Part shown: positions 2,541 through 54,426 of the stretch, piece by piece | How the letters are laid out: the number at the start of each line of letters is the position of its first letter | Numbering within the stretch: the first letter of the stretch is position 1 | Sequence record: PQ015378.1 | Strand: one strand, 5' to 3' | DNA length: 64,000 nucleotides | Program-made: the position numbers and the translations under genes | The notes under the pieces: model-generated | What the model was told of the DNA's origin: nothing | What the model saw: the letters and a program-made list of their open reading frames with translations, nothing else | The model's database searches: none

Positions 2541-3650
2541 ATGTCGCAAAGCGGTATCGATCCATTCAACCGGATAGATGGTTATACCTCCGCTCCTAGA
2601 ACCACACCTAGGATGGAACGTGGGAGCGTCCTAAAACCGTACGTGCAGGAAACTGTTGTTGTTGAAAACCTGACCACAACGGCTATTGCCACGTACAGTG
2701 GAATGGGTATTAGAACAATCCTTCCGAGCTTTAACCAACGGCCAGAGAACGTAGTTCGGATTGAACTGAAGTTGGTAGTGCCAAAAAGCACAACAATCGA
2801 TTTCCTTGCATTGGATACATTGATGCATCGGTTATCTAAAGATCAGCGGGATCAGATCCTTGACTTCTATGGAGCCTTGGATAAAGACGATTACTTCATA
2901 CAGAACTCTGTGACGTTACATCTTCATTGGGATATCCCAATGGAACTGTTGCGTCGATCACCATACGGTGTTCTTGTCGAAGGTATCAACCAAGTCGTTC
3001 AGATCTACGATCGGGATGCAGATCCAACAGATCTGTATCCAGCGACATACCAACCACCACCCCTGGCAATCGAACCCACTGAGGGTTTGCTTGGAACCTT
3101 TAATAAGCACGATCGTGCGGTTAAAGGAATCTGGGTCAACATCAAAGGTACCACGCCAATCAAAATCTGCAACAACTTGAATGACGTCACAAAGCCCGAA
3201 GGGTTCTCCGTGCTCATGAACGAAGAGTGGCAACATTTAAGCATAGATGAGTTAGCTTTCCATGGTTTCTACCTGACACCAATGCAGGCGACAGCAGCTC
3301 ACACCAATACAACCGCGGAACAAACCACCGCACACAAACAGTTCATTGCCGATCAGGACAAACAATTCGATCGGGATGAGAAGAGGGCCGATAAAGAATA
3401 CGACCGTAACGAAAAGAAAGCCAACCAAGAGTACGAACGTTCCTTCAAAGAAGACGATCGTGCGGAGAAGAGATCTGACAAGGCTTATGACCGAGAGCAG
3501 ACTCTAATCGATAAGACCCCAGTGCGCAGGAACGCTGAGTGGCAGTCTAAGGCCGCTCCGGTCATTCTGGCATTCTCGGTGGTGAGCGTAGTGATCAAGG
3601 GTGTTATCGAGATCAAGAAGTTCATCGACACACTGGTGGAAGAAAAGTAA
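2541..3650 (+). CDS. Conserved jumbo-phage hypothetical protein (gp122-like) with charged repeats and a C-terminal TM segment
   Basis: 369 aa; hydrophobic APVILAFSVVSVVI near the C-terminus; TAATG coupling to the next gene. Confidence 0.75.
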   Translation: MSQSGIDPFNRIDGYTSAPRTTPRMERGSVLKPYVQETVVVENLTTTAIATYSGMGIRTILPSFNQRPENVVRIELKLVVPKSTTIDFLALDTLMHRLSKDQRDQILDFYGALDKDDYFIQNSVTLHLHWDIPMELLRRSPYGVLVEGINQVVQIYDRDADPTDLYPATYQPPPLAIEPTEGLLGTFNKHDRAVKGIWVNIKGTTPIKICNNLNDVTKPEGFSVLMNEEWQHLSIDELAFHGFYLTPMQATAAHTNTTAEQTTAHKQFIADQDKQFDRDEKRADKEYDRNEKKANQEYERSFKEDDRAEKRSDKAYDREQTLIDKTPVRRNAEWQSKAAPVILAFSVVSVVIKGVIEIKKFIDTLVEEK

Positions 3651-5278
3651 TGGACCCGAAAATCATCGCAGGCATTCAGCGCAGAATGCCACGCATGAAC
3701 CCGATCCTGGCAAACGGTATCGCTGTAGATCAGATGATGACCGTAGACCCAGTGACTGGGATGAACCAAACCCGACAAGAGATCGATCGGATCATGGCGA
3801 TCAACGCATCGTCCTGGCCTGAAGATTTCAAGTACGTGGGCAACACGCTACAAACAGCGTGGAAACATTTCGATGAGATCACTCGTGAGTACGGCTCGAA
3901 GCGGATTGCAAACATCGCACCGACGTCTACCTATATGGTCCATCTCAACTTCACCTACAAAGGCGAACCGCTGTTCCCTCGTCCGTTGCTGTTGCCATTC
4001 GTTGGCGATGGTGGAGTGATCACACTCAACGGTGCAAAGTACACAGTGTCGCCAGTTTCGAAAGACGTTGGCTTCTCGGTACTCAACGGCAGTATCTTCA
4101 TCCCGTTCAAGCGAACCAAACTCACCTTCAAACAGAAGTCGCAACATTACTTCTGTAACGGCGAGCGGAAGATCATGTACGTGATCTGGTCGCAGATTCA
4201 CAACGAGATGGGCAAGCGCACCAAGAAGGATTACGATAAGCGTGATCGCATTGAGTCTTCGCTGGCTCAATACTTCTTCGCCCAATTCGGGGTAACCCAG
4301 ACCTTCAAGCAATGGGCAGGCGCAGACGTGCAGCTAGGCTATCGGAAGGACTTCCCTGAAGACAAGTATCCGCGCGATCAGTGGAACGTCTATCAATCGG
4401 CATACCTGACGGGTAATCACCCAACAGGTGACCATGTGTTGGTAGTTCCAGCGAATCAGGAAACTGATCTGGTCAAACGTCTGGTTGCAGGGTACTGGTA
4501 CGTCGTGGATACTTTCCCGAATCGTTTCGTGGAACCCCACTACGCCGACAGCATCGATCTCTGGCGGATCATCTTGGGCCACATGGTATTCGGTGACTTC
4601 GAGCACCAGGGTAAGGTTGCTGAAAACATCAAGTCCCACATGTTCTCGTTGGAAACCACTCTCGATGAAATGACTATGGAGGAACTCCATTCGGTCGGCA
4701 TCAAGGCCAACAACATCTGGGAGCTCTTCCATTCGATCATGACAGACATGGCTCACCACCTGTACGACTCGGATATCGATGAGACGTCGATGTATAACAA
4801 ACGACTCACGGTACTCCCGTATGTGATGGAAGACTTCAACTACGCGGTATCGATGTTCTCGTATATGTTCCAAGGTCGCCGGGATAAAACCGAGTGGTCT
4901 CTCCAGGAACTGAACGATGGACTGAAGCGTTCGTTCAAGTTGAACACAGCGATCCGTAAGCTCACGTCTGAGCACGGTGAGCTGGATACCCTGTCGATGC
5001 CAGGGTCGAACAAAGTCATTCGTTGTACGTCCATTCTGGTACCTCAGGATCGGGCTAAGTCAGCGCTGGCGCACAACAAGTCGCTGCTCGCGGATAACAC
5101 CCGGCTGATTAACGCATCCATTGCGGAAGTCTGTCAATATCGCAACCAGCCAAAGAACAACCCTGATGGTCGGGGTCGTTTGAATCTCTTTACCAAGTTC
5201 CGACCAGATGGATTGATCGAACGTCGTGAAGAGGTTCGAGAATTGATCGATGCTACACAGGCTCGGTTCAGTCGATAA
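3650..5278 (+). CDS. Non-virion RNA polymerase beta subunit, N-terminal fragment (phiKZ gp123-like)
   Basis: 542 aa; size, position after MCP and motifs (LFPRPLLLPF, SMYNKRL, GRGRLN) match gp123 from recall. Confidence 0.85.
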   Translation: MDPKIIAGIQRRMPRMNPILANGIAVDQMMTVDPVTGMNQTRQEIDRIMAINASSWPEDFKYVGNTLQTAWKHFDEITREYGSKRIANIAPTSTYMVHLNFTYKGEPLFPRPLLLPFVGDGGVITLNGAKYTVSPVSKDVGFSVLNGSIFIPFKRTKLTFKQKSQHYFCNGERKIMYVIWSQIHNEMGKRTKKDYDKRDRIESSLAQYFFAQFGVTQTFKQWAGADVQLGYRKDFPEDKYPRDQWNVYQSAYLTGNHPTGDHVLVVPANQETDLVKRLVAGYWYVVDTFPNRFVEPHYADSIDLWRIILGHMVFGDFEHQGKVAENIKSHMFSLETTLDEMTMEELHSVGIKANNIWELFHSIMTDMAHHLYDSDIDETSMYNKRLTVLPYVMEDFNYAVSMFSYMFQGRRDKTEWSLQELNDGLKRSFKLNTAIRKLTSEHGELDTLSMPGSNKVIRCTSILVPQDRAKSALAHNKSLLADNTRLINASIAEVCQYRNQPKNNPDGRGRLNLFTKFRPDGLIERREEVRELIDATQARFSR

Positions 5279-48305: not shown

Positions 48306-49682
48306 ATGAACTTTTCCAAACTCATCGCTTCGCTGGAAGAATCCGACGGCGTAGCACGCGAAGTAGACGTAACCAATGCTGCTGCTTCTGCAACCAAAGA
48401 TCACCCGGAAGCTCCGACTGCCGAAGCTGACTCGAAAGGCGAAGCCGCCACTGCCGCAGACACCGTAACTGCCGGTGACGGCGATGGTGTGACTCCTACC
48501 CTCCAGGACGCCATCGACAAGGGTGTACAGGTCGGTGAAGACGTTACCAAGATGGTAGCTGCCCAAGAAGCTCTTTCGACCCACATCGCAGCCGTAGAAG
48601 CTTTCATCGAACAGAACGTTGCCGTACCTACAGCTCTGGCACTGGCGATCCAAACTTCTCTGAAGCGCCACGACCCGATGTTCTTCAAGAAGACCGTCCC
48701 TGGCCTGGAAGCTTTCGAAGCCCCTACCGGTCGTATGACTGTTTCTCTGGAACTCCTGGACAAGCTGAAAGAAGGCGCCAAGAACGTTGGTGCTGGTATC
48801 ATGGCTGCCCTGAAGAAACTGATCGAAGCCATTCAGATGGCAATGAACAAAATGTTCACTGACTTCGGCGATCTGAAGAAGCGCCTCGAAGCTGCCGAGA
48901 AGAAAATCAAGTCCGGCGAAATCAAATCTGGTGAACCACTCAACTACGGTGGCCTGCGAAGCCTGTCTGCCAACGGTGACATCGTTGGTTCGAGTGCGGA
49001 TTCCGTCAAGCTCCTGACCACCGCCTCCAAGGGCGTGCTGATCGACTGGCCAGAACGTGTTCTGTCCATGGTCAAGCAGATGAGCCAGACTGGTAAAGAG
49101 ATCGATGTGAAGGACACTGCACAACTGGAGCAGTTCTGGAAAGCTTCGGTCAACACCATGGCTACCTCTTTCCAAGGTGTGTTTAACGGCCTGGACGTCG
49201 TCAAAGAAAGCTCCGCTGAGAAGAACGTGGTTGAGACCACTGAACTTCCAGGTGGTCGTAAGATCGTCCTGACTTACAACCTGGAGAAACTGGCCGACGG
49301 TAAAGTCGTAGCACAAAATTTCTCTCAAGGTCTCTCGGTCAAACTGGAACGTGCAGAAGGTGAGAAAGCTTCTGGTGACATCAAAGTCCCATCAAAAGAA
49401 GATGCTCTGTCCGGCATTACTGCCGCCAAAGAACTCCTGGCTATCGGTGACCAACGTCGTGACGTTGCATCCTCGCTCCGTGAGTTCAACTTCGATACGG
49501 TAGCCGGTGGTCATCAACTCGGTGGTCTGTTGCTAAGCTTCGCTATGGCCGCTCTGAACATGAACACTGCATACACCGGTTACATGAACACAACCTGTAA
49601 AGCTCTGGTAGGTTACTACGAGAAGATCGCAGGTACTGACACCAGCAATGGCAGCGGCAAAGAAGTCGCCCTCGTTAAATAA
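48306..49682 (+). CDS. Internal head (inner body) protein paralogue 1 (gp162/163 family)
   Basis: ASLE-rich acidic propeptide; conserved ...SLE...KL...A...I..L...I..A.. junction; strong codon bias. Confidence 0.8.
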   Translation: MNFSKLIASLEESDGVAREVDVTNAAASATKDHPEAPTAEADSKGEAATAADTVTAGDGDGVTPTLQDAIDKGVQVGEDVTKMVAAQEALSTHIAAVEAFIEQNVAVPTALALAIQTSLKRHDPMFFKKTVPGLEAFEAPTGRMTVSLELLDKLKEGAKNVGAGIMAALKKLIEAIQMAMNKMFTDFGDLKKRLEAAEKKIKSGEIKSGEPLNYGGLRSLSANGDIVGSSADSVKLLTTASKGVLIDWPERVLSMVKQMSQTGKEIDVKDTAQLEQFWKASVNTMATSFQGVFNGLDVVKESSAEKNVVETTELPGGRKIVLTYNLEKLADGKVVAQNFSQGLSVKLERAEGEKASGDIKVPSKEDALSGITAAKELLAIGDQRRDVASSLREFNFDTVAGGHQLGGLLLSFAMAALNMNTAYTGYMNTTCKALVGYYEKIAGTDTSNGSGKEVALVK

Positions 49683-49693
49683 GGAGCCGAACA

Positions 49694-51085
49694 ATGGCTA
49701 AGAAATCGCTCTCCAAGATGATCGCAAGCTTGGAAGATCAGGATGGTACTGCTCAGGTAGTAGATGCATCCAACCCATCGGCTGACCTGAAAGACGAAGT
49801 CGAAACTCCGAAGCGAGATGCGGTTCAGTCTGGTGACAACCAACCGACTGATGATCAGGTCCAAGCCGACATGAAAGACTTCACTGCGATGGACAAAGCA
49901 TCCATCGCTCAGGGTGAAGCCCTACACAAGAAGTTCGAACGCCTGGCCGACGCGGAAGCTTCCACCGAAGCCTACGTTGGTATCCTCCGTGGCGCTGTGA
50001 AGAAGCGTCAAGGTATCGACGGCGCCACCGCTGTCGTTATCGCACAAGACCTGAAGTCGCAGTACCCTCAGTTCTTCAAAACCATGACTGCCTCCCTGGA
50101 AGCAATCTCCATGGAAGAAGGCGAAGGGGTTGGTTACAGTTCTTCGAGTAAAGAAGTCGCTCTGACCGAGAACGCGGCCAAAGAAGGCGAAGGCAAACTT
50201 GCCAAGCTGGGTAACGCAGTGAAGGAAGGCTGGAAGAAGTTCATGGCGTGGCTGAAAGAACGCTGGCTGAAACTGAAAGGCTTCTTCGAGAAAGTCTTCG
50301 GTCGTGCCAAGACAGTGAAGGAAGCCAACCAGAAGCTGCTGGCTAATCCGAAACCAGAAGCAGCTGCTGAAGTTGCCAAGATGCTTGGTGCTCCACGCAC
50401 AGGCACTGTCGAGAAGGAACCTGCCAAAGAAGCTCCGGCTGCACAGGTAGATCCGCAAGACCGTGATCGCGTTAGTGCTCCGAACATAGGCGTGCTGTCT
50501 GGCAAAGATCCGATGGACGTGAAGAAGATCAACCTGAAAGTCCTCAAGGACATGAACGACAACTGGATGAAGCCTACCGCTGCTTCCGTTGCCGCAGTGT
50601 TGAAACTCCTGATGGGCGACGAAACCAAGACCATCCAGGCGATCGACATGCAAGCAATTGCACAAGAGATCATCAAGGTCGACTACACCCCTGTTGAAGG
50701 TCTGCTTCCAAGCAACTACGTTCTGGAAGGCACCGACAACAAGTGGGGCTTCAAGATGGTTCAACACGAACAGCCTGAGCAAATCGACTCGGTTGAGTTC
50801 TACGGTCCTGAAGCGGTCAAGCGTCTGCTGGCTACCAACGATGAACTGTTGGACATCGCTCTGGAAATGGGCGAGACCTGGGTGAAGGTTCAACAAGACA
50901 TCGAGAAAATCACCGCTGAGAAAGAGTACCTGATGGATCTCGGTAAGGCTGGTGAGATGAAGAAATGGATGACAGAGTACCTGACCACACTGTCGAACTC
51001 CGATGTTGTTCCTCTGACCAAGCTGATAATCCAGGCATGTACAGCTCGTCTGCTGGCATGTGGTAACATGACCGCCCCAAAGTAA
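49694..51085 (+). CDS. Internal head protein paralogue 2
   Basis: MIASLED N-terminus, ASLEAISME, GWKKFMAWLKE segment; AAGGAG RBS. Confidence 0.8.
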   Translation: MAKKSLSKMIASLEDQDGTAQVVDASNPSADLKDEVETPKRDAVQSGDNQPTDDQVQADMKDFTAMDKASIAQGEALHKKFERLADAEASTEAYVGILRGAVKKRQGIDGATAVVIAQDLKSQYPQFFKTMTASLEAISMEEGEGVGYSSSSKEVALTENAAKEGEGKLAKLGNAVKEGWKKFMAWLKERWLKLKGFFEKVFGRAKTVKEANQKLLANPKPEAAAEVAKMLGAPRTGTVEKEPAKEAPAAQVDPQDRDRVSAPNIGVLSGKDPMDVKKINLKVLKDMNDNWMKPTAASVAAVLKLLMGDETKTIQAIDMQAIAQEIIKVDYTPVEGLLPSNYVLEGTDNKWGFKMVQHEQPEQIDSVEFYGPEAVKRLLATNDELLDIALEMGETWVKVQQDIEKITAEKEYLMDLGKAGEMKKWMTEYLTTLSNSDVVPLTKLIIQACTARLLACGNMTAPK

Positions 51086-51426
51086 CCCCGTCTGTAGAAG
51101 CTTACAGTGAAGGTCCCGACAGCACATTTACGCACATGGGTACCACCTATGGTGTTGACGATTTACTGGTCCTGACTAGAAATACACCGGTTGTAGAACT
51201 CCAACTGTCTCTACTTACGTGGATGATTGACGATGACTACAACCTACTGCGGGCAAAGAACGCAGACACAAGTGTTCCAATCATAGTCACACAGCTTCAG
51301 TCTGGCGAATGGGTTACGCTAGATGGTTACCATCGAGTCATTAAAGCGGCTTGGATGGAAAAGCGTAAAACCATCAAGGCAAAGATTGTCACCCCTCAGA
51401 TGTTGCAACAGCTCAGAACCCTTTAA
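51082..51426 (+). CDS. ParB/Srx-like domain, probably expressed as a -1 frameshift extension of the 49694 gene (or from ATG51136)
   Basis: PII.......W..LDGYHRV..A motif; frame open from 51067; no SD before ATG51136. Confidence 0.65.
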   Translation, partial: VTPSVEAYSEGPDSTFTHMGTTYGVDDLLVLTRNTPVVELQLSLLTWMIDDDYNLLRAKNADTSVPIIVTQLQSGEWVTLDGYHRVIKAAWMEKRKTIKAKIVTPQMLQQLRTL

Positions 51427-51489
51427 GCATTTGGTTGGTACCGGTTGGTACCAACCTTATGTAACTTTAATCCGCGGAGTAACACCAAC

Positions 51490-53268
51490 ATGGCTAAGCC
51501 TGTAACCAAGACTGCTGCTAAGAAGCCAGCCGTCAAGAAACGTTTCAAAGATGCAATGAGCCTCCTGGCTTCCCTCGAATCCGTCGCCGTTGCTGAAGAC
51601 AAGAATGTATCGGTGGACGCACCGATCCAGAAAGACAACAAGGACGACCTGACCGGTACTGTGACCCCACAAGAAGAAGTGAGCGCAGATCCGAAAGCCA
51701 CTCCTACCAAAGAAGTCCCAGCTGCTCTGTCGAATCAAACCGGCGCCGCTCAGACTCAAGACGTAACCAACGTCAAAGCGAACACCACTACCGACCAAGC
51801 CAACGCTGACGAAGTTGACTCGGTCTCGAACAAAACTGCCGACGCTGTCAAAGCCGGTGAGAAAGACCTGACCACTGGTCTGGTATCCACTGAAGACGCA
51901 ATCGAAGCCAACGAAGCTGAACACATCGAACCGAAAGAAGCTGACGATGCTGTGATGAACGTTGAGCAGGCAGTCGAAGACCTGGAAGCTACCGGCATCA
52001 CCGCTGGTTCCGACAACGCTCTGAACAAAGCCGAGCAAGTCGGTAACGACATGGAAAACTTCAACAAAGTGGGCGCTGCCCTGGAAGAATTCCAATCGAT
52101 CCTGCGTGACCATCGCAAGCGCGGTGTGAAGCCTTCGCCTCAACTGGCTCGTGCTATCCAGGTCTGCCTGAAGTCGCACAACCAAACCTACTTCCGTCCG
52201 GTCATCGCATCGCTGGAAGACTTCGCCCGTCCTGACGCCTCTGTTGCTGTTTCGATTTCTCTCGAAGCACAGATCGGTGGCAAGATCAAAGAACTGGCTG
52301 CTGCTGGTAAGAACGCTCTGAAGCGTCTGCTGGAAATGATCATCGATGCCTGGAACCACATGCGTCGTGATACCGTCAAGCTGATCGAAGACCTGGACAA
52401 AACCATCAAGGCTGTCAAAGCCGCTGACCTGGACGCCGGTGCCGACAAGCCTGTCAAAGGTGGTGGTCGTCTGATGATCAACGGTGAGTTCGTTGGTGAC
52501 TCGGTTGAAGTCGTCAAGAACGTCGAAGCTGTTTCCCGTGAACTGCTGGTTGAATGGCCTGCCGCACTGTTGAACCTGCTGGGTACCGTGAAGGAATCCA
52601 AGCAGCAAGTGGTTCCTGAGGGTGGTGCTTCTTCAGCTGGCGATACTTCTGGTGGCAAGATCAAAGAAGCTGCTCAGTCTGCTATCGAAAACACCTTCCA
52701 CAAGTTCACCCAAGTGGACTCCGGTGAAGCTCCAAGCTCGATGTCGAATTTCCCTACCGTTACCCGCTCGCCAGTCCTGCCAGGTAACAAGGCTCTGTTC
52801 ATCGGCATCAAAGACGGTGACGATTCTGCCGAGTACGCTTCCGACAAATCGATGATGAAGTTTGACTTCGCTTCGACCGGTAATGCCGAAGGTGGTGAAG
52901 GTTCGGTGAAGATCCCATCGAAAGAACGCGCTCTGGCTTCCCTGAACGCTGTCAAAGGTATCGTGGCCAACCTCATCGCCAAAGATACTTCGATGAACAC
53001 CCTGAAGCAACTGCGTGCGAAGACTGAGAAGGATTCCTACGCTGCTGACGTCATCCAAGTCTCACTGGTTCAACACCGTCAGTTCATGGGTTACCTGACC
53101 ACCCTGATTAAACACTACATCTCGTTCTACAACGGTGTGGTTGAGAAGGGCGACAAAGGTACCACCGCCGTAGCCGTACGTGAAAACAACAGCATGGGCA
53201 AAACCGACGGTAAGACCACTGACCGTACCAAAGAAGCCGACGACGATTCCGTAGTCTCAACTCAGTAA
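51490..53268 (+). CDS. Internal head protein paralogue 3 with long acidic propeptide
   Basis: GGAG RBS; ASLE, AALE, ASLE and ISLE sites; TATG upstream. Confidence 0.8.
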   Translation: MAKPVTKTAAKKPAVKKRFKDAMSLLASLESVAVAEDKNVSVDAPIQKDNKDDLTGTVTPQEEVSADPKATPTKEVPAALSNQTGAAQTQDVTNVKANTTTDQANADEVDSVSNKTADAVKAGEKDLTTGLVSTEDAIEANEAEHIEPKEADDAVMNVEQAVEDLEATGITAGSDNALNKAEQVGNDMENFNKVGAALEEFQSILRDHRKRGVKPSPQLARAIQVCLKSHNQTYFRPVIASLEDFARPDASVAVSISLEAQIGGKIKELAAAGKNALKRLLEMIIDAWNHMRRDTVKLIEDLDKTIKAVKAADLDAGADKPVKGGGRLMINGEFVGDSVEVVKNVEAVSRELLVEWPAALLNLLGTVKESKQQVVPEGGASSAGDTSGGKIKEAAQSAIENTFHKFTQVDSGEAPSSMSNFPTVTRSPVLPGNKALFIGIKDGDDSAEYASDKSMMKFDFASTGNAEGGEGSVKIPSKERALASLNAVKGIVANLIAKDTSMNTLKQLRAKTEKDSYAADVIQVSLVQHRQFMGYLTTLIKHYISFYNGVVEKGDKGTTAVAVRENNSMGKTDGKTTDRTKEADDDSVVSTQ

Positions 53269-53277
53269 GGTGTCATC

Positions 53278-54426
53278 ATGACCGATATCACATTCAAGCA
53301 AGTGGACCATGACCTGGGTACCCTGCACCAGCAGACCGTGGCTCTGGAAGGTTTCCATCGCTGGGTGGTCGGTCATGGTGCCGTTACCGGTGACGTTGCA
53401 CGGGTCATCCGTGTAGCCCTGGAGGATTCCGATCCGGATGATATCTCCAAGGGCGTCACTGGTAAAGACCTCGTGACTGGCATCAAGAAAGTTTCTGTAA
53501 CCATTCGGAACATTGTTCAATGGCTGCTCCGTCAGATCGGTAAACTGATCGAGAAGATCGGTTTGGGTATCCAGAAGCTGGGTAACCTGGGTCGTGACAA
53601 CGAGAAGAAACTGAAAGCGCTCGGTAATGACCAAGCTGCCAAGTTGGACAGCGGCGACGTAGAAGTAGATCCAGATGCATTCAATCCTGCAATGCTCTGT
53701 ATCACTGGCAAGTTCGTGGGTCATGAGCTGGAACACGCCAAGACCTTCACTACTGTGACTCGTTGGTTCGCCAAAGACTTCATGGATCAGATGAACACTG
53801 TTCTGGATAACCTGGAAGGAGCAATCGCTCAACACCTCCAAGATGAATCTCCCGACGAGTTCATTAAGAAGGCTGCCCAGATCATCTCCAGCACTGTGCA
53901 CCTGCCGAAAGTTCAAATGGGTGGCGCTGCAGGTCCAGCTGAACAAGCCGGTAGTCACACTATCCATACCGTTCCTCTGTTCGGTGACATCGGTATGGTG
54001 ATGTTCGATCCGTCCAAGGCAAGCGAAGGCCTGGCAACTGTGGAATCCGCTCGTGAGTATCTCGTGTTCGACTTCGTTGAATACAACTCCAAGCAGGAAA
54101 CAGAGTTCGAGAAACTTCCAGCACCTAAGTCGGATGTTCTGCTCAAGCTGAACCAAGAGATGCTGGATGCACTGGAGTTCTGGGAATCCAACATCAAGAC
54201 TTCGGCCGCGCGTCTCCGCAAGACACTGGAAGGCGTTGAATCGTCTACCAGCAAGATCGGTACTGGCGACTCCGCCGCAACCGCTCAAGCTACCATGGGT
54301 AACATCATGGCCACCACCATCCAACGTTTGGGTGCTGGTATGGATAGCGGATCGAAATACCTGGCTCGTACGTTCAACCAAGAGTTGCACTACATCAGCA
54401 CCACGATCGCTGCCACATCGAAATGA
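53278..54426 (+). CDS. Internal head protein paralogue 4 (gp163-like)
   Basis: VALE sites; IRNIVQWLLRQI segment; AAGG RBS. Confidence 0.78.
   Translation: MTDITFKQVDHDLGTLHQQTVALEGFHRWVVGHGAVTGDVARVIRVALEDSDPDDISKGVTGKDLVTGIKKVSVTIRNIVQWLLRQIGKLIEKIGLGIQKLGNLGRDNEKKLKALGNDQAAKLDSGDVEVDPDAFNPAMLCITGKFVGHELEHAKTFTTVTRWFAKDFMDQMNTVLDNLEGAIAQHLQDESPDEFIKKAAQIISSTVHLPKVQMGGAAGPAEQAGSHTIHTVPLFGDIGMVMFDPSKASEGLATVESAREYLVFDFVEYNSKQETEFEKLPAPKSDVLLKLNQEMLDALEFWESNIKTSAARLRKTLEGVESSTSKIGTGDSAATAQATMGNIMATTIQRLGAGMDSGSKYLARTFNQELHYISTTIAATSK

Follow-up and report, generated by a model that had tools for sequence, protein, structure and literature searches.

How does a small open reading frame (ORF) come to be translated when it lies between two phage head protein genes and its annotated start codon has hardly any ribosome-binding signal? 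The locus that raises this question belongs to Pseudomonas phage RVTF4 (PQ015378.1, 302.5 kb), a phiKZ-like jumbo phage of the Psa21/D6 clade. We analyzed a stretch of 64,000 nucleotides (nt), here called the window, which is 100% identical to the record; window position 51076 corresponds to record position 237076. The phage has four co-directional internal head protein (IHP) genes in tandem, all matching PF12699 (phiKZ_IP), and an annotated 96-residue "hypothetical protein" (51136-51426) lies between the second and the third. A first-pass annotation, made from the letters of the window, had proposed that ribosomes reach this ORF by a -1 slip at the end of the second IHP gene. Comparison with related phages points to programmed -1 ribosomal frameshifting that is conserved and takes place at the last codon of that gene, with probable loading of the appended domain into the head and its release by cleavage, and we put the probability of this reading at about 0.78.

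A slippery site next to the stop codon

The second IHP gene, hereafter the carrier gene, ends with the codons ATG ACC GCC CCA AAG TAA. The sequence confirms what had been noticed first, namely a perfect C_CCA_AAG heptamer in the correct phase immediately before the stop (Table 1). In the -1 frame the last stop codon is at 51064-51066; the open stretch begins at 51067, takes in ATG 51136 and closes with the stop at 51424-51426. The fusion predicted earlier, of some 577 residues, is therefore encoded as described: the trans-frame product has 463 + 114 = 577 residues with the junction ...MTAPK-VTPSVEAYSEGPDSTFTHMG..., and there is no ATG, GTG or TTG in the -1 frame between 51067 and 51136. The six frames of the window together contain 167 open frames of 100 codons or more, of which one ends in X_XXY_YYZ and two in A_AAG. 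The heptamer is thus mildly unusual by itself, which makes a single genome weak evidence; the weight comes from 12 related junctions.

Conservation of the site in twelve junctions

We compared 12 distinct junctions with the same synteny: those of RVTF4, of its nearest sequenced relatives D6 and Psa21 (Tepukevirus), and of nine metagenomic relatives. The metagenomic set consists of five metagenomic contigs and of four further distinct junctions from six IMG/VR contigs (Psa21 itself is among the six, and two of them share a junction). The order of IHP gene, small ORF and IHP gene recurs in the relatives, and the distance from the carrier stop to the annotated ATG is 50 nt in RVTF4, D6 and Psa21 alike.

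All 12 carrier ORFs end in AAG-TAA, and 11 have A_AAG, the exception being L017 (G_GGG_AAG). Perfect heptamers occur in five junctions, C_CCA_AAG in RVTF4 and L027 and G_GGA_AAG in D6, L031 and L020, where it is located one codon earlier than in the others; both heptamers are highly shift-prone in E. coli (PMC5009743). The other sites are T_GGA_AAG (L034), A/G_GCA_AAG (Psa21, L013), C/A_GAA_AAG (L011, L014) and T_TCA_AAG (L015), and a Z_ZZN site lies within the permitted stretch in every junction. Apart from AAG-TAA the C-termini of the carriers are variable and partly unalignable, and the arrangement of site and frames is kept throughout at a synonymous divergence (pS) of about 0.65. In the -1 frame a stop codon precedes the slip site by 2-21 codons (a TGA two codons before the slip Lys in L015 and L020), so any shift must occur at the slip site. 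Since the sites vary and AAG-UAA is constant, the conserved unit is a minimal Z_ZZN beside UAA (A_AAG in 11/12) and not a full heptamer. The suggestion that homologues should keep the heptamer consequently holds for a shift-prone site, but not for the heptamer in full.

Two other sources of this arrangement were rejected. A sequencing error splitting one ORF does not fit 12 independent, differing assemblies with the same frame arrangement, and transcriptional slippage was rejected from the sequence, where the run is three A and four C only and is unconserved.

Some further properties of the junctions are worth recording. UAA is used in all of them although UGA (GTG-A in the -1 frame) would retain the same Val. 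The codon that follows this Val starts with A (Thr, Ser or Ile) because the base is shared with the zero-frame stop. The Psa21 carrier (PSA21_218, L003 3466-4008) has only 180 residues, compared to 451-473 in the other eleven carriers, and retains the conserved N-terminus (MAKGKFTKLLARISNE/SEDG..., where the slash marks the predicted cut) as well as the A_AAG-TAA end. This short carrier suggests that the carrier role can do without most of the IHP body.

Coding constraint upstream of the annotated start

The 18 codons that precede ATG 51136 evolve as protein-coding sequence in the -1 frame. Across the 12 junctions, variable columns at the three codon phases number 4, 5 and 16 of 18. Pairwise codon differences among the first nine junctions are 200 synonymous to 141 non-synonymous in the -1 frame, compared to 26/315 and 30/341 in the other frames. 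The pooled Nei-Gojobori ratio of non-synonymous to synonymous divergence (pN/pS) over all 12 amounts to 0.157 in codons 4-18 and falls to 0.094 when only codons 6-18 are counted; the remainder of the domain has 0.264, and pS is close to 0.65 in both parts. A lower pN/pS at equal pS indicates that the segment is at least as protein-constrained as the annotated ORF. The first-pass annotation had suggested checking homologues for conservation of the open frame upstream of ATG 51136 (the YxEGPDSTFTH segment), and it is conserved as protein. The tryptic peptide VTPSVEAYSEGPDSTFTHMGTTYGVDDLLVLTR of the predicted product belongs to this segment.

Initiation signals are scarce in the same region. Between the -1-frame stop and the conserved Ser-x-Glu, the 12 junctions contain no ATG, GTG or TTG except for one far-upstream ATG in L017, and no near-cognate start codon is common to them at any position. 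ATG 51136 had been said to lack a Shine-Dalgarno (SD) sequence, and it does show the weakest anti-SD pairing among the 66 annotated starts of the window (+0.4 kcal/mol over the upstream 18 nt), while the neighboring IHP genes reach -6 to -8.5 kcal/mol. The corresponding Met, residue 19 of the extension, is replaced by Gln, Gln or Leu in three of the 12 relatives, and there gene callers chose other, non-homologous starts. In the AlphaFold2 (AF2) model Met19 is inside a predicted beta-hairpin (strands 15-18 and 21-24), and a start there would drop the first strand. A search for homologues in the same context that begin at the equivalent of this Met with their own ribosome-binding site found none. 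Judged by these comparisons, the -1 frame downstream of the slip site is protein-coding and has no initiation signal of its own.

Gene callers have also placed starts at chance in-frame ATGs within the conserved segment, for example in S-M-E of L027 (2501, P0002) and Y-M-E-G of L031 (P0003). As a result of such choices and others, the small protein is present in public protein sets with at least five different false N-termini.

A minimal ParB/Srx-fold domain

The extension had been described as a ParB-like module that binds DNA or nucleotides. Its predicted mature part, AYSEGPDSTFTH...LRTL, matches phrog_17560 (E 8.5e-23), and a profile of 18 family members finds the SbnI N-domain in the PDB (E 3e-4), with DGYHR aligned to DGVHR. 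The AF2 model of the extension has a mean predicted local distance difference test (pLDDT) score of 82 and a predicted template modeling (pTM) score of 0.73; residues 1-6 (VTPSVE) are below pLDDT 50. The top Foldseek matches of this model in the PDB are sulfiredoxin (Srx), the ParB N-terminal CTPase domain, Noc, KorB, SbnI and PadC (probability 1.0, E from 7e-4), and those in the viral library BFVD are proteins named ParB/Sulfiredoxin domain-containing. The family comprises 4490 cluster representatives at E <=0.001 in a library of 1.84 billion proteins. R57, P66, D81, G82, H84 and R85 are invariant in its alignments, and the Y-x-E-G..ST..H segment is always included in distant homologues. Pfam models gave no match to the RVTF4 domain (no ParBc), and only two family members reach ParBc_2 (5.6e-4).

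Three narrower assignments were rejected. A canonical ParB would have a helix-turn-helix and a dimerization domain; this domain has neither, being only about 108 residues long and ending 25-30 residues past the motif. No ParA was found among the annotated neighboring genes. The sulfiredoxin consensus is G-C-H-R with the catalytic Cys, whereas here the motif is D-G-Y-H-R with Tyr in its place, and Tyr, Trp, Leu, Asn and other residues occupy this position across the family. Phage P1 DdrB, which would have indicated a DdrB-like ParB, was undetected (hhalign probability 0.2, E 0.27) with a single-sequence target of limited sensitivity.

Based on the model and these matches, the domain is a minimal ParB/Srx-fold domain and not a ParB. 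With sulfiredoxin, the ParB N-terminal CTPase domain and the SbnI N-domain it has in common the fold and the G-x-H/R-R pocket motif, but not the catalytic Cys of the first or the additional domains of ParB. From the earlier description the fold and the DGxHR motif stand; a helix-turn-helix or other DNA-binding module was not found in it. Nucleotide binding is the safest functional assignment. A nuclease or NTPase activity is possible by analogy, as both have been discussed for virion-associated ParB/Srx domains (Iyer et al., PMC5512222).

In other phages the same domain is found either alone or within larger proteins. Free-standing homologues can have clear initiation signals (GAGGAG, a 6-nt spacer and GTG in L019; AAGAGG, a 7-nt spacer and ATG in L035/36), and Erwinia phage Huxley gp11, EL ORF075 and Xoo-sp14 gp29 are also free-standing. 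Many of these proteins begin M-E-Y-x-E-G or M-A-Y-x-E, just before the conserved Y-x-E-G. In-frame fusions, which the first-pass annotation had suggested looking for, do exist, but their carriers differ from IHP. PA5oct gp140 (249 residues), annotated "structural protein, ESI-MS/MS", has the domain at its C-terminus. In ORF042 of Ralstonia phage RP12 (L008 842-2836) the first 484 residues align to the whole of phiKZ gp180 (E 3e-99), an RNA polymerase subunit that is on record as a structural protein of the head, and the C-terminal ParB/Srx domain occupies residues 557-658. No match to the domain was obtained by tblastn in phiKZ, phiPA3 or 201phi2-1.

The gp180-domain arrangement of RP12 is also seen in RP31 and the FLC phages. 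Elsewhere the domain is embedded, sometimes twice, in large multidomain phage proteins (P0033, P0037, P0128 and others), which recalls the "polyvalent protein" theme. P0037 seems to have a portal-type N-terminus followed by the domain, as judged by eye only.

A protease-type motif at the domain boundary

The residues that connect carrier and domain follow the consensus V-[T/S/I]-x-S-x-E-[A/V/E/S]-Y in the 12 junctions. Ser and Glu are invariant in all of them, with synonymous codon changes, and the residue between them is V, N, Q, T, L or M. The closest free-standing relatives have S-K-A/T at this position, with Glu missing. The phiKZ protease gp175 cleaves after S-x-E, in gp93 at SLE-13 and in gp86 at SQE-122, and the related protease of SPN3US cuts at A-x-E (PMC5694885). 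RVTF4 encodes a homologue of gp175 (MEROPS S80 type) with 58.5% identity over all 270 residues, located 286 nt past the window end, and gp175 homologues are also present in Psa21, D6 and RP12. The proposal that S-V-E is a protease-type site is therefore well matched by an invariant linker motif and a protease gene, and we treat it as a predicted site. The N-terminus that a cut after S-V-E would create (A-Y-S-E-G) nearly matches the M-E/A-Y-x-E-G of free-standing homologues.

Fusions of the RP12 type have A-L-E or A-T-E at the linker position, and in RP12 itself A-L-E stands two residues before the conserved Tyr. A protease linker as a rule for all C-terminal fusions was nevertheless rejected: PA5oct has I-S-E, and many fusions are without S/A/G-x-E before the conserved Tyr. 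Because the rule fails across the wider family, the cleavage proposed here is limited to the RVTF4 clade and possibly RP12.

An N-terminal A-S-L-E (LIASLE/ESDG, MIASLE/DQDG and LLASLE/SVAV) is present in at least three of the four IHP paralogues (48306-54426), among them the carrier and both its neighbors. By analogy with phiKZ gp93, this fits propeptide removal by a gp175-type protease.

Proposed mechanism

We suggest that most ribosomes stop at the UAA of the carrier gene and release the 463-residue IHP. A minority would slip back by one base, with tRNA-Lys moving on AAG, so that AAA is read in place of the AAG of A_AAG. A slippery P-site codon would assist in some of the phages; in RVTF4, tRNA-Pro could move together with tRNA-Lys, from CCA to CCC. 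The shifted ribosomes would read 114 more codons and produce the 577-residue fusion, made of the IHP, a disordered V-T-P-S-V-E linker and the 108-residue ParB/Srx domain, in which ATG 51136 encodes an internal methionine and is not a start. The IHP part would then bring the fusion into the prohead, where the gp175-type protease may cut after S-V-E, and presumably also after the N-terminal S-L-E of the carrier, leaving a free domain (AYSEG...) in low copy number. Packaging and ejection of the domain are suggested by analogy with phiKZ and SPN3US. More speculatively, the freed domain could be ejected with the DNA and the inner-body proteins and act early as a nucleotide-binding or nucleotide-hydrolyzing enzyme, possibly a nuclease. 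To the complete scenario for chimalliviruses of this clade, in which the frameshift doses, the IHP carries and the protease frees a few copies per capsid of an enzyme dependent on nucleoside triphosphates, which are ejected and act on DNA of host or phage or on nucleotide pools within minutes of infection, before phage gene expression, we give somewhat less than an even chance.

Several points speak against this mechanism, beginning with the slip site itself. Seven of the 12 sites are imperfect heptamers and L017 is without A_AAG, so the efficiency may be very low or phage-dependent. The consensus RNA structure 3' of the site in the 12 junctions is weak (-4.6 kcal/mol) with little covariation, the 98-nt fold of RVTF4 has z = -0.33 relative to shuffled sequence, no upstream SD-like stimulator is common to the junctions, and Rfam gave no match in 49000-53000, to a frameshift element or to any other family. 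Termination at UAA is usually efficient, contrary to what one would expect a "shifty stop" to require, and the shiftiness of A_AAG is conditional on a host with tRNA-Lys(UUU) alone. S-x-E is a motif of low information, and RVTF4 has another one, S-G-E, inside the folded domain. Finally, no mass spectrometry of virions or infected cells was found for RVTF4, D6 or Psa21 in the literature searched, and no slippage annotation exists in the GenBank records of the clade.

One candidate stimulator had been named at the outset, a small CTGTA/TACAG stem (51092-51107). The stem is present in RVTF4 (51092-51096 with 51103-51107) and is part of its minimum-energy fold; as a stimulator it was rejected, as it is absent from the other 11 junctions and does not outperform shuffled sequence in folding energy.

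Alternative explanations

It could be that the frameshift is real and serves only for low expression or for a stable, uncleaved fusion, the domain being unreleased or not ejected and S-x-E being kept for another reason, e.g. as an N-terminal cap. An acidic residue 1-2 positions before the conserved Tyr is indeed common in the family, even in free-standing members (M-E-Y...), but the closest of these have S-K-A/T instead. Likewise, S-x-E is frequent by chance, but its P3 Ser is invariant in all 12 junctions amid variable residues of a segment predicted to be disordered. While S/A/G-x-E is not a feature of every linker in other fusions, RP12 does have A-L-E at the equivalent position, and the RVTF4 carrier, like processed phiKZ IHPs, also bears S-x-E near its N-terminus, in a genome that encodes a close gp175 homologue. 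We consider retention of the domain unlikely, though a real possibility as far as the steps after the frameshift are concerned.

Alternatively, a separate full-length domain could be made by non-canonical initiation, or by termination and reinitiation on a non-AUG codon 1-3 codons past UAA, with no fusion at all. This explanation profits from the position of the stop, which adjoins the beginning of the conserved segment in 12/12 junctions, and tight coupling at overlapping stop and start signals is common in phages. Near-cognate codons are scattered among the junctions as well (ATT in Psa21, CTG in L014, ATC in L011 and the ATG in S-M-E of L027), but no start-like codon is shared at any position, RVTF4, L013 and L015 have none, and no SD accompanies them. 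Reinitiation also leaves unexplained why an A-preceded AAG, or Z_ZZN, is conserved in the zero frame and why S-x-E is conserved in this gene context alone. We find it improbable, and less likely than retention.

That the annotation is right, with the 96-residue ORF translated independently from ATG 51136 and the heptamer and open -1 frame coincidental, is most improbable of all: this ATG is the first canonical start in the frame, is the start chosen in the PQ015378.1 annotation and, through its counterpart codon, in those of D6 and Psa21, and is kept as Met in nine of 12 relatives, but it has the poorest SD pairing in the window, gives way to Gln or Leu in the other three relatives, would as a start remove the first beta-strand of the model, and follows 18 codons on which purifying selection is stronger than on the domain itself and which are part of the domain in all distant homologues.

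Comparison with known recoding and cargo systems

The frameshift proposed for RVTF4 resembles that of lambda gpG/gpGT, where a slip near the 3' end of a gene in the late structural module sets a fixed ratio of short to extended product, and where shifting, likewise at a low level, is not known to depend on a strong stimulator. The lambda heptamer, G_GGA_AAG, is identical to that of D6, L031 and L020, and the ratio of the two lambda products is 30:1 (PMC5009743). Lambda differs in that both products are absent from the virion and the extension serves to recruit the tail tube protein, whereas RVTF4 has an IHP carrier, a slip site abutting the stop, an enzyme-like ParB/Srx extension and a protease motif in the linker. 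Recoding at the end of a head gene also gives a minor, C-terminally extended head component in T7 (gene 10A/10B) and in Listeria phages PSA and A118 (PMC5009743). Those extensions decorate a shell protein and stay attached, while that of RVTF4 is on an inner-body carrier, folds independently and is probably cleaved off.

Slippage on A_AAG in B. subtilis cdd is helped by an upstream SD-like stimulator; none was found in the 12 junctions, where the conserved neighbor is the UAA stop. In cdd (A_CGA_AAG) and in IS1222 (G_CGA_AAG) a single tRNA-Lys slips on A_AAG without a slippery P-site codon (PMC5009743), and the six junctions with GCA, GAA, TCA or T_GGA before AAG are of this type.

The carrier resembles the inner-body and ejection proteins of phiKZ, 201phi2-1 and SPN3US, which are processed by the gp175/gp245 protease: it is likewise a phiKZ_IP protein with an N-terminal S-L-E, in a phage with a homologue of the protease. 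In the literature searched, no cargo domain appended by frameshift to phiKZ-type inner-body proteins has been described. Loading of enzymes, including ParB/Srx domains, on a targeting part, with processing by a peptidase and injection with the DNA, has been put forward for P1 DarA/DdrB and for polyvalent proteins (Iyer et al. 2017, PMC5512222). The loading idea proposed for RVTF4 is the same as in these systems and in the capsid-targeting sequences of T4. The differences are that the dose in RVTF4 would be set by recoding, instead of depending on a gene of its own or on one polyprotein, and that the protease would be the prohead serine protease, unlike the fused metallopeptidase of polyvalent proteins.

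Significance

That phage structural genes use -1 frameshifting is well known, and loading of enzymes into heads with proteolysis has been proposed, and partly shown, for T4, P1 and polyvalent proteins. What is new is the combination of a recoding dose at the last codon of an IHP gene in a nucleus-forming jumbo phage, a domain that is free-standing elsewhere, and a conserved prohead-protease motif exactly at the domain boundary. The proposed frameshift at the IHP end is unannotated in all four GenBank records, we found no paper describing it, and a search for literature on RVTF4 or on frameshifting in IHP genes returned nothing relevant. To our knowledge, no programmed frameshift has been described before in a head gene of a phiKZ-like jumbo phage, and we know of no earlier case in which recoding doses an enzyme-like inner-body cargo, as opposed to extending a shell or chaperone protein.

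If the proposed frameshift is right, the annotation would be corrected in at least three GenBank phage genomes, where the product begins 18 codons earlier and without a start codon of its own. It would also mean that A_AAG beside a stop, without a recognizable stimulator, can be maintained over a long evolutionary distance. The freed domain would be a candidate for an ejected, early-acting protein in nucleus-forming phages, in which events before the nucleus are poorly understood, and the same domain would reach the virion by in-frame fusion in RP12 (on the RNA polymerase subunit) and PA5oct (gp140). The arrangement further suggests a natural route by which jumbo phage capsids could be loaded with foreign proteins in a low, preset number of copies.

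Features of the locus

The coordinates of the elements discussed above are collected in Table 1. The PF12699 score of the carrier is above the Pfam cut-off, which places it among the phiKZ-type IHPs. A scan of the + strand between the carrier ORF and the small ORF revealed nothing that resembles a promoter or a terminator, and the window contains no tRNA gene.

Table 1. Sequence elements of the carrier gene and its -1 extension in RVTF4 (window positions).
Feature	Position	Strand	Basis or remark
Carrier gene, IHP paralogue 2 (463 residues, zero frame)	49694..51085	+	PF12699 E 1.7e-10; PHROG internal head protein; PQ015378.1 annotation
N-terminal S-L-E (residues 12-14), candidate propeptide cleavage site of carrier	49727..49735	+	S/G-x-E at ~11-16 in all 12 carriers
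Slippery heptamer C_CCA_AAG	51076..51082	+	X_XXY_YYZ phase; last sense codon AAG = 51080-51082
Linker V-T-P-S-V-E, -1 frame; S-V-E (51091-51099) predicted prohead-protease site, cut after Glu	51082..51099	+	S-x-E in 12/12
Zero-frame UAA stop, directly 3' of slip site	51083..51085	+	Sole conserved candidate stimulator ("shifty stop"); UAA in 12/12 junctions
Predicted mature ParB/Srx-fold domain, 108 residues + stop, -1 frame	51100..51426	+	phrog_17560, PDB profile, AF2, Foldseek
Annotated start ATG of 96-residue ORF, most likely internal Met (extension residue 19)	51136..51138	+	SD pairing, Met replacement, model
D-G-Y-H-R, ParB/Srx nucleotide-pocket motif	51322..51336	+	D81, G82, H84, R85 invariant; aligns to SbnI DGVHR

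The ParB/Srx ORF and the IHP gene that follows it are 60 nt apart, and this gap contains, directly past the ORF's stop, an inverted repeat at 51428-51461 (CATTTGGTTGGTACC / GGTACCAACCTTATG) with 15-nt arms that are 87% complementary and a 4-nt loop. It has no T-run and hence was not called by the terminator scan.

Apart from the carrier ORF, the window has a single open frame of 100 or more codons that ends in A_AAG, that of gene 2541..3650, which closes with A_GAA_AAG TAA (3644-3652). The last A of this stop is also the first base of the following gene (TAATG), which is annotated "polymerase" (3650..5278), and a -1 slip would fuse both products. The "polymerase" gene has its own ATG with a moderate SD (-6.0 kcal/mol), and the overlap may reflect ordinary translational coupling.

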